Positions 3,360 through 58,914 of a stretch of 64,000 nucleotides of DNA are shown here, piece after piece (within the stretch, counting starts at the first letter, position 1; each line of letters starts with the position of its first letter). The position numbers and the translations under genes are program-made. The DNA is taken from contig NC_091291.1 in NCBI RefSeq assembly GCF_032444005.1, positions 134,168,001 through 134,232,000 of the forward strand, written 5' to 3'. This DNA is from Ranitomeya imitator (lineage: Eukaryota). The notes below the pieces were generated by a model. It did not search any database, was not told the origin of the DNA, and saw only the letters and a program-made list of their open reading frames with translations.

Positions 3360-5674
3360 TATTCAAAAAAAATAAAGGGAACACTTAAACAACAGAATAT
3401 AACTCAAAGTAAATCAAACTGTCCACTTAGGAAGCAACACTGACTGACAATCAATTTCACATGCTGTTGTGCAAATGGAATAGACAACAGATGGAAATTA
3501 TTGGCAATTATCAAGACACCCTCAATAAAGGAGTGATTCTGCAGGTGGGGACCACAGACCACATCTCAGTACCAATGCTTTCTGGCAGATGTTTTGGTCA
3601 CTTTTGAATGTTGGTTGTGCTTTCACACTAATGGTAGCATGAGATGGACTCTACAACCCACAGAAGTGGCTCAGGTAGTGCAGCTCATCCAGGATGGCAC
3701 ATCAATGTGAGCTGTGGCAAGAAGGTTTGCTGTGTCTATCAGCACAGTGTCCAGAGGCTGGAGGTGCTACCAGGAGACAGGCCAGTACACCAGGAGACGT
3801 GGAGGGGGCCGTAGGAGGGCAACAACCCAGCAGCAGGACCGCTACCTCAGCCTTTGTGCAAGGAGGAACAGGAGGAGCACTGCCAGAGCCCTTCAAAATT
3901 ACCTCCAGCAGGCCACAAATGTGCATGTGTCTGCACAAACAGAAACCGACTCCATGAGGATGGTCTGGGTGTCCGACATCCACAGAGGGGGTTGTGCTCA
4001 CAGCTAGGGCCGGCTCCAGGTTTTTGAGGGCCCGGGCAAAAGAGTCTCAGTGGGCCCCCCTTTAACACATACCACGATTCATGATCACATATAAACACAG
4101 CCATGTAGTATAACACAGCCCACGTAGTATATAACACAGCCACGTAGCATATAACACAGCCATGTAGTATATAACAGCCCACGTAGCATATAACACAGCC
4201 CACATAGCATTTAACAGCCCATATAGTATATAGCACAGCCACATAGTATATAACACGGCCCACGTAGTTTATAGAACAGCCATGTAGTTTATAGCACAGA
4301 CATGTAGTATACAGCACAGCCCCCCCCCCCTCATCCGCAAGAATGGCCCCATAGTCCAGTACTCACTGTTAGTTACAGAAAAAAAAAACACTCCTCACCT
4401 CTCAACGTTTCCACGCCGCACTGCTCCCTCCCTGCTCTGGTCTCGGAGGCAGAGTGGGGAATGATGGGAGAGGGAGTGTCTGGTGACGCTCTCTCCTCCA
4501 TCATTTGCTTTGAACTTTACCGGCAGACGCCGGTAAAGTTCAAAGCGGCGGCGGGGGAGTTGGCGCTTGCGACAGGCGGGCCCCCTGCCTCACAGGGGCC
4601 CCATAGCAGCTGCGTGATGTGCCGTTAGCTGAAGGCCCCTTGGGGAGCGGGGGCGCTAGGCACTGGCAGCTGCCTGCCCCTAACGCCGGCCCTAAATGGG
4701 CCCCCCTGTCTCGCCAGGGCCCCGGCACTTGCCCGGGTACGCCAGATGCTGACGCCGACCCTGCCCACAGCCCAACACCGTGCAGGACGCTTGGCATTTG
4801 CCACAGAACACCAGGATTGGCAAATTCGCCACTGGCGCCCTGTGCTCTTCACAGGTGAAAGCAGGTTCACACTGAGCACATGTGACAAAGTCTGGAGATG
4901 CCGTGGATAGTGATCTGCTGCCTGCAACATCCTTCAGCATGACCGGTTTGGCAGTGGGTCAGTAATGGTGTGGGGTGGCATTTCTTTGGAGGGCCGCACA
5001 GCCCTCTATGTGCTCGCCGGAGGTAGCCTGGCTGCCATTAGGTACCAAGATGAGATCCTCAGACCCCTCGTGAGACCATATGCTGGTGCGGATGGCCCTG
5101 GGTTCCTCCTAATGCAGGACAATGCCAGACCTCATGTGGCTGGACTGTGTCAGCAGTTCCTGCAAGATGAAGGCATTGAAGCTATGGACTGGCCGCCCGT
5201 TCCCCAGACCTGAATCCGATTGAACACATCTGGGACATCATGTCACGCTCCATCCACCAACATCATGTTGCACCACAGACTGTCCAGGAGTTGGCAGATG
5301 CTTTAGTCCATGTCTGGGAGGAGATCCCTCAGGAGACCATCCACCGCCTCATCAGGAGCATGCCCAGGCATTGTAGGGAGGTCATACAGGCACGTGGAGG
5401 CCACACACACTACTGAGCATCATTTCCTTGTCTTGAGGCATTTCCACTGAAGTTGGATCAGCCTGTAATATGATTTTCCACATTGATTTTGAGCATCATT
5501 CCAACTCCAGACCTCCATGGGATATTCACTTTGATTTACATTGATAATTGTTAGGTTTTATTGTTCTGAACACATTCCACTATGCAATGAATACAAATTT
5601 GCAACTGGAATAATTTCATTCAGAGATATCTAGGATGTGGTATTTTAGTGTTCCCTTTATTTTTTTGAGCAGTG
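3357..5674 (+). mobile_element. Decayed Tc1/mariner DNA transposon interrupted by a hAT-type insertion
   Basis: TIRs CACT(A/G)(T/C)TCAAAAAAA(A)TAAAGGGAACACT at both ends, right end followed by TA. Transposase fragments: [14 protein letters not shown]..., RPVLFTGESRF (first catalytic D changed to G), MVWGGISLEGRT...LMQDNARPH. Frameshifts present. Confidence 0.9.
4005..4763. mobile_element. Non-autonomous hAT-type element nested in Tc1
   Basis: Ends (T/C)AGGGCCGGC ... GCCGACCCTG; 8-bp TSD CTCACAGC / CCCACAGC (7/8). The Tc1 reading (VLTAQHRAGRLAF) resumes across it. Internal ~20-bp TAGTATATAACACAGCCCACG repeat. Confidence 0.75.
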
Positions 5675-33168: not shown

Positions 33169-33691
33169 TCTGCAGAAGAAGAAAAGTAAAAGAAGAAAAG
33201 GACGGTATATACATCCCCAGGACGGTATATACATCCCCAGGACGGTATATACATCCCCAGGACGGTATATACATCCCCAGGACGGTATATACATCCCCAG
33301 GACGGTATATACATCCCCAGGACGGTATATACATCCCCAGGACGGTATATACATCCCCAGGACGGTATATACATCCCCAGGACGGTATATTCATCCCCAG
33401 GACGGTATATACATCCCCAGGACGGTATATTCATCCCCAAGACGGTATATACATCCCCAGGACGGTATATTGATCCCCAGGACAGTATATACATCACCAG
33501 GACGGTATATCCATCCCCAGGACGGTATATACATCCCCAGGACGGTATATACATCCCCAGGACGGTATATACATCCCCAGGACGGTATATTCATCCCCAG
33601 GACGGTATATCCATCCCCAGGACGGTATATCCATCCCCAGGACGGTATATTCATCCCCAGGACGGTATATTCATCCCCAGGACGGTATATA

Positions 33692-35298
33692 CAGTGGGGC
33701 AAAAAAGTATTTAGTCAGTCAGCAATAGTGCAAGTTCCACCACTTAAAAAGATGAGAGGCGTCTGTAATTTACATCATAGGTAGACCTCAACTATGGGAG
33801 ACAAACTGAGAAAAAAAAATCCAGAAAATCACATTGTCTGTTTTTTTTAACATTTTATTTGCATATTATGGTGGAAAATAAGTATTTGGTCAGAAACAAA
33901 CAATCAAGATTTCTGGCTCTCACAGACCTGTAACTTCTTCTTTAAGAGTCTCCTCTTTCCTCCACTCATTACCTGTAGTAATGGCACCTGTTTAAACTTG
34001 TTATCAGTATAAAAAGACACCTGTGCACACCCTCAAACAGTCTGACTCCAAACTCCACTATGGTGAAGACCAAAGAGCTGTCAAAGGACACCAGAAACAA
34101 AATTGTAGCCCTGCACCAGGCTGGGAAGACTGAATCTGCAATAGCACACCAGCTTGGAGTGAAGAAATCAACAGTGGGAGCAATAATTAGAAAATGGAAG
34201 ACATACAAGACCACTGATAATCTCCCTCGATCTGGGGCTCCACGCAAAATCCCACCCCGTGGGGTCAGAATGATCACAAGAACGGTGAGCAAAAATCCCA
34301 GAACCACGCGGGGTGACCTAGTGAATGAACTGCAGAGAGCTGGGACCAATGTAACAAGGCCTACCATAAGTAACACACTACGCCACCATGGACTCAGATC
34401 CTGCAGTGCCAGACGTGTCCCACTGCTTAAGCCAGTACATGTCCGGGCCCGTCTGAAGTTTGCTAGAGAGCATTTGGATGATCCAGAGGAGTTTTGGGAG
34501 AATGTCCTATGGTCTGATGAAACCAAACTGGAACTGTTTAGTAGAAACACAACTTGTCGTGTTTGGAGGAAAAAGAATACTGAGTTGCATCCATCAAACA
34601 CCATACCTACTGTAAAGCATGGTGGTGGAAACATCATGCTTTGGGGCTGTTTCTCTGCAAAGGGGCCAGGACGACTGATCCGGGTACATGAAAGAATGAA
34701 TGGGGCCATGTATCGTGAGATTTTGAGTACAAACCTCCTTCCATCAGCAAGGGCATTGAAGATGAAACGTGGCTGGGTCTTTCAACATGACAATGATCCA
34801 AAGCACACCGCCAGGGCAACGAAGGAGTGGCTTCGTAAGAAGCATTTCAAGGTCCTGGAGTGGCCTAGCCAGTCTCTAGATCTCAACCCTATAGAAAACC
34901 TTTGGAGGGAGTTGAAAGTCCGTGTTGCCAAGCGAAAAGCCAAAAACATCACTGCTCTAGAGGAGATCTGCATGGAGGAATGGGCCAACATACCAACAAC
35001 AGTGTGTGGCAACCTTGTGAAGACTTACAGAAAACGTTTGACCTCTGTCATTGCCAACAAAGGATATATTACAAAGTATTGAGATGAAATTTTGTTTCTG
35101 ACCAAATACTTATTTTCCACCATAATATGCAAATAAAATGATAAAAAAACAGACAATGTGATTTTCTGGATTTTTTTTTCTCAGTTTGTCTCCCATAGTT
35201 GAGGTCTACCTATGATGTAAATTACAGACGCCTCTCATCTTTTTAAGTGGTGGAACTTGCACTATTGCTGACTGACTAAATACTTTTTTGCCCCACTG
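33692..35298 (+). mobile_element. Full-length Tc1-family IR/DR transposon (probably Passport/Eagle-Glan-like)
   Basis: TA|CAGTGGGGCAAAAAAGTATTTAGTCAG ... |TA. TIRs 33692-33900 and 35091-35298 differ at only about 1-2 positions, with outer and inner DRs (AAGTATTT(A/G)GTCAG). Family assignment is from memory. Confidence 0.95.
34060..35082 (+). CDS. Tc1 transposase, 340 aa, uninterrupted
   Basis: Paired HTH N-terminus, GAPR linker, WSDETK / HDNDPKH / NPIEN with 34 residues between the second D and E (DD34E), ends KGYITKY*. Confidence 0.95.
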
Positions 35299-38200
35299 TA
35301 CATCCCCAGGACGGTATATTCATCCCCAAGACGGTATATACATCCCCAGGATGGTATATTGATCCCCAGGACGGTATATTCATCACCAGGACGGTATATA
35401 TATCACCAGGACGGTATATTCATCCCCAGGACGGTATATTCATCCCCAGGACGGTATATTCATCCCCAGGACGGTATGTACATCACCAGGACGGTATATA
35501 CATCCCCAGGACGGTATATACATCCCCAGGACGGTATATTCATCCCCAGGACGGTATATACATCCCCAGGACGGTATATTCATCGCCAGGACGGTATATT
35601 CATCCCCAGGACGGTATATTCATCACCAGGACGGTATATCCATTCCCAGGACGGTATATTCATCACCAGGACGGTATATTCATCACCAGGATGGTATATT
35701 CATCCCCAGGACGGTATATACATCACCAGGACGGTATATTCATCACCAGGATGGTATATTCATCCCCAGGACGGTATATTCATCCCCAGGACGGTATATT
35801 CATCCCCAGGACGGTATATACATCCCCAGGACGGTATATACATCCCCAGGACGGTATATTCATCCCCAGGACGGTATATTCATCCCCAGGACGGTATATT
35901 CATCCCCAGGACGGTATGTACATCACCAGGAAGGTATATTGATCCCCAGGACGGTATATCCATCCCCAGGACGGTATATACATCCCCAGGACGGTATATA
36001 CATCCCCAGGACGGTATATACATCCCCAGGACGGTATATACATCCCCAGGACGGTATATACATCCCCAGGACGGTATATACATCCCCAGGACGGTATATT
36101 CATCCCCAGGACAGTATATACATCCCCAGGACGGTATATTCATCCCCAGGACGGTATATTCATCCCCAGGACGGTATATACATCCCCAGGACGGTATATA
36201 CATCACCAGGACTGTATATACGGTACATCCCCAGGACGGTATATTCATCCCCAGGACGGTATATTCATCCCCAGGACGGTATATTCATCCCCAGGACGGT
36301 ATATACATCCCCAGGACGGTATATTCATCCCCAGGACGGTATATTCATCCCCAGGACAGTATATACATCACCAGGATGGTATATTCATCCCCAGGACGGT
36401 ATATACATCACCAGGACTGTATATACGGTACATCCCCAGGACGGTATATTCATCCCCAGGACGGTATATTCATCCCCAGGACGGTATATACATCCCCAGG
36501 ACGGTATATTCATCCCCAGGACGGTATATTCATCCCCAGGACGGTATATACATCACCAGGACGGTATATTCATCCCCAGGACGGTATATACATCCCCAGG
36601 ACGATATATACATCACCAGGACGGTATATACATCCCCAGTACGGTATATTCATCCCCAGGACGGTATATACATCACCAGGACGGTATATTCATCCCCAGG
36701 ACGGTATATACATCCCCAGGACGATATATTCATCCCCAGGACGGTATATTCATCCCCAGGACGGTATATACATCACTAGGACTGTATATACGGTACATCC
36801 CCAGGACGGTATATCCATCCCCAGGACGGTATATACATCACCAGGACGGTATATACATCCCCAGGACGGTATATACATCACCAGGACGGTATATTCATCA
36901 CCAGGACGGTATATACATCCCCAGGACGGTATATTCATCACTAGGACTGTATATACGGTACATTCCCAGGACGGTATATTCATCCCCAGGACGGTATATA
37001 CATCCCCAGGACGGTATATACATCACCAGGACGGTATATACATCCCCAGGACGGTATATACATCCCCAGGACGGTATATACATCCCCAGGACGGTATATA
37101 CATCCCCAGGGCGGTATATACATCCCCCGGGGCGGTATATACATCCCCAGGATGGTATATTCATCACCAGGACGGTATATACATCCCCAGGACGGTATAT
37201 ACATCCCCAGGACGGTATATTGATCCCCAGGACGGTATATTGATCCCCAGGACGGTATATTCATCACCAGGACGGTATATTCATCCCCAGGACGGTATAT
37301 ACATCCCCAGGACGGTATATACATCCCCAGGACGGTATATTCATCCCCAGGACGGTATATTCATCCCCAGGACGGTATATTCATCCCCAGGACGGTATAT
37401 TCATCCCCAGGACGGTATATTCATCCCCAGGACGGTATATCCATCCCCAGGACGGTATATACATCACCAGGACGGTATATACATCCCCAGGACAATATAT
37501 TCATCCCCAGGACGGTATATACATCCCCAGGACGGTATATTGATCCCCAAGACGGTATATACATCCCCAGGACGGTATATTGATCCCCCAGGACGGTATA
37601 TTGATCCCCAGGACGGTATATTCATCACCAGGATGGTATATTCATCACCAGGACGGTATATTCATCACCAGGACGGTATATTCATCACCAGGACGGTATA
37701 TTCATCACCAGGACGGTATAATCATCCCCAGGACGGTATATACATCACCAGGACGGTATATACATCACCCGGACGGTATATACATCACCAGGACGGTATA
37801 ATCATCCCCAGGACGGTATATTCATCCCCAGGACGGTATATACATCACCCGGACGGTATATACATCACCAGGACGGTATATTCATCCCCAGGACGGCATA
37901 TTCATCCCCAGGACGGTATGTACATCACCAGGACGGTATATTGATCCCCAAGACGGTATATACATCCCCAGGACGGTATATACATCACCAGGACGGTATA
38001 TACATCACCAGGACGGTATATACATCACCAGGACGGTATATACATCCCCAGGACGGTATATACATCCCCAGGACGGTATATTCATCCCCAGGACGGTATA
38101 TTCATCCCCAGGACGGTATATTCATCCCCAGGATGGTATATACATCCCCAAAACGGTATATTGATCCCCAGGACGGTATATACATCCCCAGGACGGTATA

Positions 38201-41200
38201 TACATCCCCAAAACGGTATATTGATCCCCAGGACGGTATATACATCCCCAGGACGGTATATTCATCCCCAGGACGGTATATTCATCCCCAGGACAGTATA
38301 TACATCCCCAGGACGGTATATTCATCACCAGGACGGTATATACATCCCCAGGACGGTATATTCATCACCAGGACGATATATTCATCCCCAGGACGGTATA
38401 TACATCCCCAGGACGGTATATTCATCCCCAGGACGGTATATTCATCCCCAGGACGGTATATTCATCCCCAGGACGGTATATACATCACCAGGACGGTATA
38501 TTCATCCCCAGGACGGTATGTACATCACCTGGACGGTATATTGATCCCCAAGACGGTATATACATCACCAGGACTGTATATACGGTACATCCCCAAAACG
38601 GTATCTTGATCCCCAGGACGGTATATCCATCCCCAGGACGGTATATCCATCCCCAGGACGGTATATCCATCCCCAGGACGGTATATACATCCCCAGGACG
38701 GTATATACATCCCCAGGACGGTATATACATCCCCAGGACGGTATATACATCCCCAGGACGGTATATACATCACCAGGACGGTATATTCATCACCAGGACG
38801 GTATATTCATCACGAGGACGGTATATTCATCCCCAGGACGGTATATTCATCACGAGGACGGTATATTCATCCCCAGGACGGTATATACATCACCAGGACG
38901 GTATATACATCACCAGGACGGTATATACATCCCCAGGACGTTATATTCATTCCCAGGACGGTATATTCATCCCCAGGACGGTATATTCATCCCCAGGACG
39001 GTATATTCATCACCAGGACGGTATATTCATCCCCAGGACGGTATATACATCCCCAGGACGGTATATACATCCCCAGGACGGTATATACATCACCAGGACG
39101 GTATATTCATCACCAGGACAGTATATTCATCCCCAGGACGGTATATTCATTCCCAGGACGGTATATTCATCCCCAGGACGGTATATACATCACCAGGACG
39201 GTATATTCATCCCCAGGACGGTATGTACATCACCTGGACGGTATATTGATCCCCAAGACGGTATATACATCACCAGGACTGTATATACGGTACATCCCCA
39301 AAACGGTATCTTGATCCCCAGGACGGTATATCCATCCCCAGGACGGTATATCCATCCCCAGGACGGTATATCCATCCCCAGGACGGTATATACATCCCCA
39401 GGACGGTATATACATCCCCAGGACGGTATATACATCCCCAGGACGGTATATACATCCCCAGGACGGTATATACATCCCCAGGACGGTATATACATCCCCA
39501 GGACGGTATATTCATCACCAGGACGGTATATTCATCACGAGGACGGTATATTCATCCCCAGGACGGTATATACATCACCAGGACGGTATATACATCACCA
39601 GGACGGTATATACATCCCCAGGACGTTATATTCATTCCCAGGACGGTATATTCATCCCCAGGACGGTATATTCATCCCCAGGACGGTATATTCATCACCA
39701 GGACGGTATATTCATCCCCAGGACGGTATATACATCCCCAGGACGGTATATACATCCCCAGGACGGTATATACATCCCCAAGACGGTATATTCATCACCA
39801 GGACGGTATATTCATCCCCAGGACGGTATATTCATCCCCAGGACGGTATATACATCCCCAGGACGGTATATACATCACCAGGACGGTATATACATCCCCA
39901 GGACGGTATATACATCCCCAGGACGGTATATACATCCCCAGGACGGTATATACATCCCCAGGACGGTATATACATCACCAGGACGGTATATTCATCACCA
40001 GGACGGTATATTCATCACGAGGACGGTATATTCATCCCCAGGACGGTATATACATCACCAGGACGGTATATACATCACCAGGACGGTATATACATCCCCA
40101 GGACGTTATATTCATTCCCAGGACGGTATATTCATCCCCAGGACGGTATATTCATCCCCAGGACGGTATATTCATCCCCAGGACGGTATATACATCCCCA
40201 GGACGGTATATACATCCCCAGGACGGTATATACATCACCAGGACGGTATATTCATCACGAGAACGGTATATTCATCCCCAGGACGGTATATACATCACCA
40301 GGACGGTATATACATCACCAGGACGGTATATACATCCCCAGGACGTTATATTCATCCCCAGGACGGTATATTCATCCCCAGGACGGTATATACATCACCA
40401 GGACGGTATATTCATCCCCAGGACGGTATATACATCCCCAGGACGGTATATACATCCCCAGGACGGTATATTTATCACCAGGACGGTATATTCATCCCCA
40501 GGACGGTATATTCATCACCAGGACGGTATATACATCCCCAGGACGGTATATACATCCCCAGGACGGTATATCCATCCCCAGGACGGTATATCCATCCCCA
40601 GGACGGTATATCCATCCCCAGGACGGTATATCCATCCCCAGGACGGTATATACATCCCCAGGACGGTATATACATCCCCAGGACGGTATATACATCACCA
40701 GGACGGTATATTCATCACCAGGACGGTATATACATCCCCAGGACGGTATATTCATCACGAGGACGGTATATTCATCCCCAGGACGGTATATACATCACCA
40801 GGACGGTATATACATCACCAGGACGGTATATACATCCCCAGGACGTTATATTCATCCCCAGGACGGTATATTCATCCCCAGGACGGTATATTCATCCCCA
40901 GGACGGTATATACATTCCCAGGACGGTATATACATCCCCAGGACGGTATATACATCACCAGGACGGTATATTCATCCCCAGGACGGTATATACATCCCCA
41001 GGACGGTATATACATCCCCAGGACGGTATATACATCCCCAGGACGGTATATTCATCACCAGGACGGTATATTCATCCCCAGGACGGTATATACATCCCCA
41101 GGACGGTATATTCATCACCAGGACGGTATATTCATCCCCAGGACGGTATATACATCCCCAGGACGGTATATTCATCACCAGGACGGTATATTCATCCCCA

Positions 41201-41580
41201 GGACGGTATATACATCCCCAGGACGGTATATACATCCCCAGGACGGTATATACATCCCCAGGACGGTATATTCATCTCCAGGACGGTATATTCATCCCCA
41301 GGACGGTATATACATCCCCAGGACGGTATATACATCCCCAGGACGGTATATACATCCCCAGGACGGTATATACATCCCCAGGACGGTATATACATCACCA
41401 GGACGGTATATTCATCACCAGGACGGTATATTCATCACGAGGACGGTACATTTCCCCTCCTCACACTCTGCCTTCAGCCTCCATCATGTCCATCCTCTGC
41501 ACTCCTCCCACTACTGTCCATTACACCTCCTCAGGGTCCTCACCCATCACCACGAGCCCCGGGGACTCATGCGCACGTAC

Positions 41581-54094: not shown

Positions 54095-55842
54095 GTAAGT
54101 AACGGATGGAAGAGAACTAGGTCCAGTGCACACAGGGTTATCAGCTAATGCCCAGGTGTACACGCTCACGTGGCGCCTGTGTGGCAGCAGGCACAGTCTG
54201 GATAGACGCTGTGGAATCCGTCCACCATATGACCATCCACCACTGCAGGGAAGATGTTGTATCGCATGGTCCCAATTAAAAAAAAATACTATTGTAGATG
54301 TGCCACAAAATCAATATGTAATACGTTCTGATTTCCCTGTGGATTATTTGCAAAATCTGTAGTGGAAAATGTATAACCTGCCTTTAAAGCAAAGGGTTAT
54401 GGAGAGGGGGCAAAGTACCTACAGTCTCATGGAGAGCAGAGAAAAATGGCTAAAAAGAAGGAAGAAGGCACATTACGTAGTGAGTGCAGAACAGAAGCTG
54501 TGTTGCTATATGAGCAATTGAAGACTGCAACACCCTGGATACACACAGAACTCATCCAAACTAATTACTTGGAGAGACACACGGAGCTCACATCCATCCT
54601 ATATTACTGGGAGAGACACACAGAGCTCACATCCAGCCTATATTACTGGGAGAGACACACAGAGCTCACATCCAACCTATATTACTGGGAGAGACACAAA
54701 GAGCTCACATCCATCCTATATTACTGGGAGAGACACACAGATCTCACATCCAACCTATATTACTGGGAGAGACACACAGAGCTCACATACAGCCTATATT
54801 ACTGGGAGAGACACACAGAGCTCACATACAGCCTATATTACTGGAAGAGACACACAGAGCTCACATCCAACCTATATTACTGGGAGAGACACACAGATCT
54901 CACATCCAACCTATATTACTGGGAGAGACACACAGAGCTCACATACAGCCTATATTACTGGGAGAGACACACAGATCTCACATCCAACCTATATTACTGG
55001 GAGAGACACACAGAGCTCACATCCATCCTATATTACTGGGAGAGACACACAGATCTCACATCCAACCTATATTACTGGGAGAGACACACAGAGCTCACAT
55101 ACAGCCTATATTACTGGGAGAGACACACAGAGCTCACATACAGCCTATATTACTGGAAGAGACACACAGAGCTCACATCCAACCTATATTACTGGGAGAG
55201 ACACACAGATCTCACATCCAACCTATATTACTGGGAGAGACACACAGAGCTCACATACAGCCTATATTACTGGGAGAGACACACAGATCTCACATCCAAC
55301 CTATATTACTGGGAGAGACACACAGAGCTCACATACAGCCTATATTACTGGGAGAGACACACAGAGCTCACATACAGCCTATATTACTGGAAGAGACACA
55401 CAGAGCTCACATCCAACCTATATTACTGGGAGAGACACACAGATCTCACATCCAACCTATATTACTGGGAGAGACACACAGAGCTCACATACAGCCTATA
55501 TTACTGGGAGAGACACACAGAGCTCACATCCAACCTATATTACTGGGAGAGACACACAGATCTCACATCCAACCTATATTACTGGGAGAGACACACAGAG
55601 CTCACATACAGCCTATATTACTGGGAGAGACACACAGATCTCACATCCAACCTATATTACTGGGAGAGACACACAGATCTCACATCCAACCTATATTACT
55701 GGGAGAGACACACAGATCTCACATCCAACCTATATTACTGAGAGAGACACAGAGAGCTCACATCCGGCCTATATTACTGGGAGAGACACACATACCTCAC
55801 ATCCAGCCTATATTACTGGAAGAGACACACAGAGCTCACATA

Positions 55843-57473
55843 CAGTTAGGGCCAGAAATATTTGGACAGTGACACAATTTTCACGATTTGGGCTCTGCAT
55901 GCCACCACATTGGATTTGAAATGAAACCTCTACAACAGAATTCAAGTGCAGATTGTAACGTTTAATTTGAAGGGTTGAACAAAAATATCTGATAGAAAAT
56001 GTAGGAATTGTACACATTTCTTTACAAACATTCCACATTTTAGGAGGTCAAAAGTAATTGGACAAATAAACATAACCCAAACAAAATATTTTTATTTTCA
56101 ATATTTTGTTGCAAATCCTTTGGAGGCAATCACTGCCTTAAGTCTGGAACCCATGGACATCACCAAACGCTGGGTTTCCTCCTTCTTAATGCTTTGCCAG
56201 GCCTTTACAGCCGCAGCCTTCAGGTCTTGCTTGTTTGTGGGTCTTTCCGTCTTAAGTCTGGATTTGAGCAAGTGAAATGCATGCTCAATTGGGTTTAGAT
56301 CTGGAGATTGACTTGGCCATTGCAGAATGTTCCACTTTTTGGCACTCATGAACTCCTGGGTAGCTTTGGCTGTATGCTTGGGGTCATTGTCCATCTGTAC
56401 TATGAAGCGCCGTCCAATCAACTTTGCAGCATTTGGCTGAATCTGGGCTGAAAGTATATCCCGGTACACTTCAGAATTCATCCGGCTACTCTTGTCTGCT
56501 CTTATGTCATCAATAAACACAAGTGACCCAGTGCCATTGAAAGCCATGCATGCCCATGCCATCACGTTGCCTCCACCATGTTTTACAGAGGATGTGGTGT
56601 GCCTTGGATCATGTGCCGTTCCCTTTCTTCTCCAAACTTTTTTCTTCCCATCATTCTGGTACAGGTTGATCTTTGTCTCATCTGTCCATAGAATACTTTT
56701 CCAGAACTGAGCTGGCTTCTTGAGGTGTTTTTCTGTCTATTTTTGGTATTGATGAATGGTTTGCATCTAGATGTGAACCCTTTGTATTTACTGTCATGGA
56801 GTCTTCTCTTTACTGTTGACTTAGAGACAGATACACCTACTTCACTGAGAGTGTTCTGGACTTCAGTTGATGTTGTGAACGGGTTCTTCTTCACCAAATT
56901 AAGTATGCGGCGATCATCCACCACTGTTGTCATCCGTGGACGCCCAGGCCTTTTTGAGTTCCCAAGCTCACCAGTCAATTCCTTTTTTCTCAGAATGTAC
57001 CCAACTGTTGATTTTGCTACTCCAAGCATGTCTGCTATCTCTCTGATGGATTTTGTCTTTTTTTTCAGCCTCAGGATGTTCTGCTTCACCTCAATTGAGA
57101 GTTCCTTTGACCGCATGTTGTCTGCTCACAGCAACAGCTTCCAAATGCAAAACCACACACCTGGAATCCACCCCTGACCTTTTAACTACTTCATTGATTA
57201 CAGGTTAACGAGGGAGACGCCTTCAGAGTTAATTGCAGCCCTTAGAGTCCATTGTCCAATTACTTTTGGTCCCTTGAAAAAGAGGACGCTATGCATTACA
57301 GAGCTATGATTCCTAAACCCTTTCTCCGATTTGGATGTGGAAACTATCATATTGCAGCTGGGAGTGTGCACTTTCAGCCCATATTACATATATAATTGTA
57401 TTTCTGAACATGTTTTTGTAAACAGCTAAAATAACAAAACTTGTCACTGTCCAAATATTTCTGGCCCTAACTG
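55843..57473 (-). mobile_element. Full-length Tc1-family transposon with frameshifted transposase
   Basis: TA|CAGTTAGGGCCAGAAATATTTGGACAGTGAC ... |TA, identical ~31-bp TIRs. The array unit CACATA|CAGCC resumes exactly after it. Confidence 0.93.
56098..57116 (-). pseudogene. Tc1 transposase, frameshifted
   Basis: N-half MRSKELSIEVKQNILRL..GRPRMTT..KPFINTKNRQ (56583-57116) and C-half MAWACMA..QMDNDPKH..SPDLNPIEHAF..KGFATKY* (56098-56565) are out of frame near 56735. Confidence 0.9.
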
Positions 57474-58914
57474 TACAGCCTATATTACTGGGAGAGACAC
57501 ACAGATCTCACATCCAACCTATATTACTGGGAGAGACACACAGAGCTCACATCCAGCCTATATTACTGGGAGAGACACACAGAGCTCACATCCAGCCTAT
57601 CTTACTGGGAGAGACACAGAGCTCACATCCAGCCTATCTTACTGGGAGAGACACACAAATCTCACATCCAACCTATATTACTGGGAGAGACACACAGCTC
57701 ACATCCAGCCTATATTACTGGGAGAGACACACAGAGCTCACATCCAGCCTATATTACTGGGAGAGACACACAAATCTCACATCCAACCTATATTACTGGG
57801 AGAGACACACAGCTCACATCCAGCCTATATTACTGGGAGAGACACACAGAGCTCACATCCAGCCTATATTACTGGGAGAGACACACAGAGCTCACATCCA
57901 TCCTATATTACTGGGAGAGACACACAGATCTCACATCCAACCTATATTACTGGGAGAGACACACAGAGCTCACATCCAGCCTATATTACTGGGAGAGACA
58001 CACAGAGGTCACATACAGCCTATATTACTGGAAGAGACACACAGAGCTCAAATCCAGCCTATATTACTGGGAGAGACACACAGAGCTCACATCCAGCCTA
58101 TATTACTGGAAGAGACACACAGAGCTCACATCCAGCCTATATTACTGGGAGAGACACACAGACCTTACATCCAGCCTATATTACTGGGAGAGACACGCAG
58201 AGCTCACATCCAACCTATATTACTGGGAGAGACACACAGAGCTCACATCCAGCCTATATTACTGGGAGAGACACACAGAGGTCACATACAGCCTATATTA
58301 CTGGAAGAGACACACAGAGCTCAAATCCAGCCTATATTACTTGGAGAGACACACAGAGCTCACATCCAGCCTATATTACCGGGAGAGACACACAGAGGTC
58401 ACATACAGCCTATATTACTGGAAGAGACACACAGAGCTCAAATCCAGCCTATATTACTGGGAGAGACACACAGAGCTCACATCCAGACTATATTACTGGG
58501 AGAGACACACAGATCTCACATCCAGCCTATATTACTGGGAGAGACACACAGAGCTCACATCCAACCTATATTACTGGGAGAGACACACAGCTCACATCCA
58601 GCCTATATTACTGGGAGAGACACACAGAGCTCACATCCAGCCTATATTACTGGGAGAGACACAGAGCTCACATCCAGCCTATATTACTGGGAGAGACGCA
58701 CAGATCTCACATCCAACCTATATTACTGGGAGAGACACACAGAGCTCACATCCATCCTATATTACTGGGAGAGACACAAAGACCACACATCCAACCTATA
58801 TTACTGGGAGAGACACACAGACCTCACATCCAGCCTATATTACTGGAAGAGACACACAGAGCTCACATCCAGCCTATATTACTGGGAGAGACACAAAGAG
58901 CTCACATCCATCCT

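Follow-up and report, generated by a model that had tools for sequence, protein, structure and literature searches.

A complete Tc1-like transposon in a satellite array of Ranitomeya imitator is very probably a young, decaying copy of an abundant poison-frog family

A 64-kb stretch of the Ranitomeya imitator genome, free of N and hereafter referred to as the window, was analyzed for the structure, relatives and probable fate of a complete Tc1-like DNA transposon of 1,607 bp located at positions 33692 to 35298. Alignment of its ends defined a left terminal inverted repeat of 209 nt (33692-33900, plus strand), which starts with CAGTGGGG, and a right terminal inverted repeat of 208 nt (35091-35298, minus strand). 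The two ends differed at two places: a 1-nt indel (T8 vs. T7, 33841-33848) and one substitution (33850 vs. 35141). A 14-nt core, AAGTATTTRGTCAG, had exactly four matches in the window, compared to a chance expectation of about 0.04, and these matches corresponded to the outer and the inner repeat of each end. The outer direct-repeat core of the left end, a presumed transposase binding site, was at 33705-33718 and the inner core of this end at 33880-33893 (both plus strand), while the inner and outer cores of the right end were at 35098-35111 and 35272-35285, respectively (both minus strand). Within each end the outer and inner cores were 175 nt apart. Thus, with inverted ends of 209 and 208 nt that each carry an outer and an inner direct repeat, the element has the architecture of the IR/DR subgroup, in which the inverted ends are typically about 200 to 250 bp.

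The element was found to be inserted in a host satellite array (33199-41452) with a 20-bp unit, AGGACGGTATATACATCCCC. Direct reading of the sequence revealed a TA on the left (33690-33691) and on the right (35299-35300) of the element, the target-site duplication of the Tc1 family. When the element and one TA were taken out, the satellite unit GGACGGTATA-TA-CATCCCCA (20 bp) was whole again, and the shift in satellite register across the insertion was accounted for in full (1629 = 1607 + 2 + 20). The insertion TA is within the TATATA stretch of the satellite, which fits the preference for AT repeats published for related Tc1 elements (PMC9777934). An 8-kb satellite is hard to assemble and an error of assembly in these repeats could be suspected on this ground; however, an exact TA duplication followed by a satellite that is back in register is not what a misjoin would give. 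The array itself spans 8.2 kb with 91-95% matches and includes spurious long open reading frames (e.g., 861 aa at 35359-37944). Minisatellites were unusually many throughout the window, for which the tandem-repeat table had 34 rows.

Between its ends, the element carries a transposase open reading frame (34060-35082, plus strand) that encodes 340 aa, ends in a stop codon and is without interruption. Three Pfam domains were detected in the translated protein, all above their curated cut-offs: HTH_SB (81 bits, residues 1-52), HTH_Tnp_Tc3_2 (82.5 bits, residues 70-140) and DDE_3 (52 bits compared to a cut-off of 28.6). A bipartite (paired-like) N-terminal helix-turn-helix DNA-binding domain was present, and the PAI and RED subdomain structures of Sleeping Beauty matched as well. 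When the catalytic domain of Sleeping Beauty (PDB 5cr4) was aligned to the transposase (E-value of 2.4e-81), the catalytic triad was assigned to D153 (34516-34518), D244 (34789-34791) and E279 (34894-34896), the same residues as in the SB100X alignment. These alignments thus reveal the DD34E spacing of the Tc1-family triad. An earlier note on this DNA had described an uninterrupted 340-aa DD34E frame, terminal inverted repeats of about 209 bp with one or two differences, inner and outer direct repeats, and a perfect TA duplication beyond which the host repeat resumes in register, and each of these features was recovered in our analysis. Two departures from the usual motifs that it had listed, ELFS (S161) and SLDLNPIE (L273), were likewise confirmed.

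The proteins closest to the transposase were R. imitator gene models, most of which had 96-98% identity across the transposase portion, with P0122 the highest at 98.2%. These were followed by Logan sequences (91-94%), by pit viper proteins from Crotalus and Agkistrodon (92%) and by many teleosts (81-90%), including Hemibagrus, Hucho, Oncorhynchus, Prochilodus and Scortum. In a maximum-likelihood protein tree, the window copy and the R. imitator copies formed a star-like clade (support 100/99). Its terminal branch of 0.012 was inside the range of 0.006 to 0.055 observed for the R. imitator copies, which makes the window copy a typical product of the burst. The poison-frog clade grouped with a characiform fish and the pit vipers, and the salmonid and catfish copies were placed elsewhere, as were those of the frog Leptobrachium. 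The tree thus breaks the phylogeny of the hosts, a pattern that fits the prediction of horizontal transfer among fish, amphibians and reptiles; the root of the transposase tree is arbitrary and, therefore, no donor can be named. The pit viper sequences (P0123 of Crotalus and P0124 of Agkistrodon) were intact 340-aa transposases, 92% identical to the frog copy, with the poison-frog clade and the South American Prochilodus as tree neighbours. That all named hosts of this group of frogs, pit vipers and Prochilodus are of the New World hints at a regional network of horizontal transfer.

The family is very abundant in poison frogs. In run X24, 11,688 contig pieces were found on the element, with 2,016 of these at 99% identity or above (a count of pieces that is not convertible to copy number). 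A sister subfamily, about 5-8% different from the window copy, dominated X24 and was also the one detected in the RNA library X20, which is labelled 'amphibian metagenome'. Based on these two runs, at least two subfamilies coexist, and it is the other one that is present in the RNA library. The matches in X20 were mostly relatives at 90-95% identity, and an RNA library is by itself no proof of transcription.

These properties are similar to those reported for other dendrobatids. In Oophaga pumilio (the strawberry poison frog), Rogers et al. 2018 (PMC6278860) described Tc1 families of 39,000-78,000 copies with less than 2% divergence, found the closest matches in salmon and other freshwater fishes (Tc1-3_SSa as the best Repbase match), proposed candidate horizontal transfer between fish and frog, and detected highly expressed Tc1 transcripts in unfertilised eggs. 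For the dyeing poison frog, an assembly available as a preprint is reported to include 6.57% Tc1 elements. The family of the window element shares with the dendrobatid Tc1 families a high copy number, a low divergence, nearest non-frog relatives among freshwater fishes (salmonids included) and candidate transfer between fish and frog, and R. imitator gene models CAJ0964550.1 and CAJ0925950.1 are among the known members. By contrast to these families, the window copy has four private amino-acid changes.

Among known transposon systems, the element was compared to ZB, Sleeping Beauty and Passport. ZB (Tc1-8B_DR) is a native zebrafish Tc1 that is highly active (PMC7913693). Like the window element, ZB is about 1.6 kb in length, encodes a transposase of 340-341 aa, has two repeats in each of its ends of about 200 bp, and duplicates TA in AT-rich repeats. 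Comparison by eye gave matches to ZB at 18 of the first 27 nt of the end and showed that the inner repeat of the window element includes the 16-mer GGAAAATAAGTATTTG of the ZB terminus; beyond the first ~27 nt, however, the two ends diverge. The species in which a 2022 survey (PMC9777934) detected a ZB-like clade were 271 fishes, 17 anurans, 19 squamates (Crotalus among them) and 5 agnathans (lampreys and hagfish). In that survey, the intact ZB-like copies of anurans were 1596-1618 bp in length with transposases of 340-343 aa and ends of up to 211 bp, and three anurans had at least 100 intact copies. The host range and anuran dimensions of this clade fit the window element, whereas the survey entries for R. 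imitator and O. pumilio are of 343 aa and those for pit vipers of 338 aa, not 340. Identity of the catalytic domain between the ZB group and the SB group was given as 58-61% in the same survey, and the value of about 59% that we obtained by hand count for the window element and Sleeping Beauty is inside this range. In the supplementary text of the survey that was searched, no sequence matched the peptides or ends of the element, and the terminal 21-mer of the element was not found in the literature searched. Judged from its ends, host range and dimensions, the window element is a likely candidate member of the ZB-like clade.

Sleeping Beauty, a reconstructed salmonid Tc1 (PDB 5cr4, 2m8e and 5unk), is similar to the window element in transposase length (340 aa), domain order, residue numbers of the DD34E triad, IR/DR ends and TA target. 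It is unlike the window element in its end sequences, in the catalytic domain (about 59% identity) and in having G161 and P273, where the window copy has S and L. Sleeping Beauty clades are reported to have above 80% identity within a clade and about 68% catalytic-domain identity between SB and SB-like (PMC9777934); with a hand count of about 59% to the SB100X catalytic domain, membership of the window element in SB or SB-like was rejected. Passport (PPTN), a native active Tc1 of flatfish (PMC2651795), is likewise of the IR/DR type and about 1.6 kb in length, and has relatives in fish as well as frogs, a distribution ascribed to horizontal transfer. Its terminus, CAGTGCCTTGCATAAGTAT as taken from primers, differs from CAGTGGGGCAAAAAAGTAT of the window element from position 6 onward, and membership in Passport was rejected on this comparison of the ends.

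To distinguish family traits from private changes, the window copy was compared to public contigs of four runs (X1, X8, X24 and X20), from which the family majority was read; these are collapsed contigs of coded organisms, possibly of other species, and X1 and X8 represent two differently labelled organisms from two studies. X1 and X8 each provided one contig of 1,250 nt that covered 33871-35120 and, thus, the whole open reading frame. Both contigs differed from the window copy at the same six bases only, with no gaps. Two of the six form a dinucleotide change: at 34146 (codon 29), where the contigs read C, the change is silent in the window copy, and at 34147 (codon 30), where they read A, the window copy encodes H in place of the family N (N30H). 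A further silent private change was identified at 34314 (codon 85) by contig comparison. At codon 161 (34540-34542) the window copy has AGT for S instead of the G of the family motif ELFG (G161S), with the base G in place of A at 34540 in all four runs and the residue G also in Sleeping Beauty. At codon 224 (34729-34731) it has ACA for T instead of the A of contigs and frog proteins (A224T), a site that is variable across the family. At codon 273 (34876-34878) it has CTA for L instead of the family P (P273L), with C in place of T at 34877 in all four runs and P also in Sleeping Beauty and Mos1. All positions are given for the plus strand. In X24, the letter that differs from the window copy made up 80 to 99.8% of the summed depth at five of the six places. 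N30 was present in six of six Ranitomeya proteins, and G161, A224 and P273 in seven of seven R. imitator proteins; among the other, mostly fish, relatives, G161 was found in 109 of 113 and P273 in 112 of 113. Thus, S161 and L273 are private to the window copy and are not traits of the family.

The ends of the window copy were close to the family majority as well. An X8 contig over the left end (33689-33900) had no substitutions and one gap, and an X1 contig over the right end (35091-35300) had no differences, after which its flank was different. As the extra T at 33841 is the one mismatch with the end contigs, the A/T substitution that distinguishes the two ends is a feature of the family, and only the extra T in the run at 33841-33848 is private. 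In total, 6 substitutions and 1 indel in 1,607 bp were private to the copy, corresponding to 0.37-0.44% (Poisson 95% range of 0.14-0.90%). The substitutions were 4 nonsynonymous to 2 synonymous compared to a neutral expectation of 76% nonsynonymous in the open reading frame (n = 6, of little power), and the private changes follow a pattern of neutral decay. After six random substitutions, the frame would be free of stop codons with a probability of about 0.77; thus, an intact frame says only that the copy is young. When an anuran rate of 1-3 x 10^-9 substitutions per site per year was assumed, a divergence of 0.4% would place the insertion roughly 1-4 million years ago, which is young for a vertebrate DNA transposon and not brand new.

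The four amino-acid changes could also predate the insertion, in which case the window copy would represent a non-autonomous passenger sub-lineage that has a defective transposase and was spread by the canonical enzyme. Mobilisation by the enzyme of other copies is well established in Tc1/mariner elements. In X24, the depth without the majority letter reached about 6% at 34540 and 4% at 34314, as a passenger sub-lineage might leave behind. At 34729 and 34877, however, this departure was below 1%, a level compatible with a single copy and noise, and none of the seven R. imitator copies had any of the four changes. We therefore regard a passenger sub-lineage as quite improbable, while a small sub-lineage that had acquired some of the changes before insertion may exist, given that the majority derives from collapsed contigs. 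A domesticated gene, that is, a transposase recruited by the host and held under selection, would be at odds with the full ends that the element has kept and with private nonsynonymous changes at conserved sites, which are the opposite of what selection for function would leave; domestication and the assembly artefact considered above are together extremely improbable.

The four amino-acid changes are not equivalent in the sites that they affect. N30H and A224T are at sites that vary in the family, whereas G161S and P273L alter positions that hardly vary among family members and have the same residue in Sleeping Beauty. P273, located six residues ahead of the catalytic E279, is the S-P-D-L proline, and in the HMMER alignment L273 was opposite the proline of SPDL in SB100X and of YSPDL in Mos1. 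In the Mos1 pre-cleavage complex, P278 and P121 act together as a wedge by which the flanking TpA is positioned for cleavage of the second strand (PMC4344528), and in Hsmar1 alanine mutants of the Y, P and L of YSPDL are hypoactive (PMC3936726). This mariner evidence on the YSPDL proline is from alanine substitution in a DD34D enzyme, with activity that was reduced and not abolished; neither P273 nor G161 is covered by the data of the Sleeping Beauty structure paper. An active transposon is expected to have no changes at family-invariant residues, and the window copy has two at residues that are nearly so. Based on their position at conserved residues and on homology to mariner, a DD34D enzyme, G161S and P273L have probably left the window copy with an impaired transposase, whether weakened or dead.

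These findings bear on whether the window copy is itself a currently active, autonomous element with a working S161/L273 transposase, which would make it a good start for a gene-transfer tool. The open frame, DD34E triad, four repeat cores, both termini and TA duplication are all intact, the copy is only about 0.4% from the family majority, and the proline mutant of the mariner YSPDL motif is hypoactive and not dead, all of which speak for an active copy. Set against this are the two private changes at residues conserved in frog copies, in nearly all of the other, mostly fish, relatives and in Sleeping Beauty (for P273, in Mos1 also), a ratio of 4:2 that gives no sign of purifying selection, and an open frame that is to be expected by chance. 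In addition, the exact 340-aa protein had no second copy among about 15 billion proteins, and of the RNA runs in the index none had above 12% of the words of the element and none had the subfamily of the window copy at near identity. An active and autonomous window copy is thus unlikely. With G161S and P273L private and the open frame of little weight, the copy does not stand out as a candidate active element in the way that the earlier note had proposed. Its description as a recent, active element is upheld as regards youth (the copy being about 0.4% from the family majority, as the term very young had implied) and ends that look mobilisable, and is weakened as regards activity, with a transposase of its own that is probably impaired. 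The view that this group is prone to horizontal transfer between fish and amphibians is in accord with the tree, in which frog, fish and pit viper copies are joined against the phylogeny of their hosts.

Taken together, these results argue strongly that the element is an ordinary, recently inserted and decaying copy of a very high-copy Tc1 family of poison frogs, one that is shared with teleosts and pit vipers by horizontal transfer. In the proposed course of events, a transposase would have bound both repeats, outer and inner, at each end, excised the element by cut-and-paste and inserted it at a TA, which was duplicated in the process; the target would have been a TA of the TATATA stretch in the 20-bp satellite. 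About seven changes (0.4%) would then have accumulated in the copy after insertion, in a pattern that fits neutrality, with two of these (G161S and P273L) at conserved residues. As its ends equal the family majority except for one extra T, the copy may still be movable by the transposase of other copies, provided that an active one remains. The majority contig over the open reading frame differs from the window copy by six substitutions and no gaps, none of which makes a stop, such that canonical copies with an open frame are conceivable as drivers. Ongoing transposition of the family in present-day poison frogs through canonical G161/P273 copies, with the window copy still mobilisable or its S161/L273 enzyme partly active, is possible, though we consider it doubtful.

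The discovery value of this single copy is small, as some anurans have young and intact-looking Tc1 copies by the hundreds to thousands in their genomes, and the sharing of such elements among fish, frogs and reptiles is published. A huge Tc1 family of poison frogs that is common to fishes and pit vipers is likewise already known (Rogers 2018 and the ZB/SB survey of 2022). The statement of the earlier note that natively active vertebrate Tc1 elements are rare is dated: ZB is both native and active, 350 of the 995 genome entries of the survey have intact copies of the ZB, ZB-like, SB or SB-like type (PMC9777934), and some anurans harbor 100 or more. The analysis does provide a useful negative result: the motif oddities are recent damage of this one copy and, thus, those in search of a native active amphibian Tc1 should turn to natural copies with the majority residues. 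Should the family prove active, Passport and ZB would be joined by a further native Tc1 tool from a vertebrate, and the large genomes of poison frogs would in part be explained; if it is still transposing, a native amphibian Tc1 system would be usable as a tool for gene transfer.

Other Tc1-related sequences were detected in the window. A second Tc1 element (55841-57475, minus strand) was of a different family, with 42% amino-acid identity to the element at 33692-35298. Its 34-nt terminal arms were perfect, TA included, and its transposase was split into two open reading frames (56583-57116 and 56098-56565). A relic of a distant Tc1/mariner transposase, frame-shifted and with 25-28% amino-acid identity, was identified at 4776-5413 (plus strand). 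The second Tc1 element was located exactly between two blocks of a 39-bp minisatellite (54541-55841 and 57476-58914); thus, judging from their positions, both Tc1 elements of the window landed in tandem arrays.
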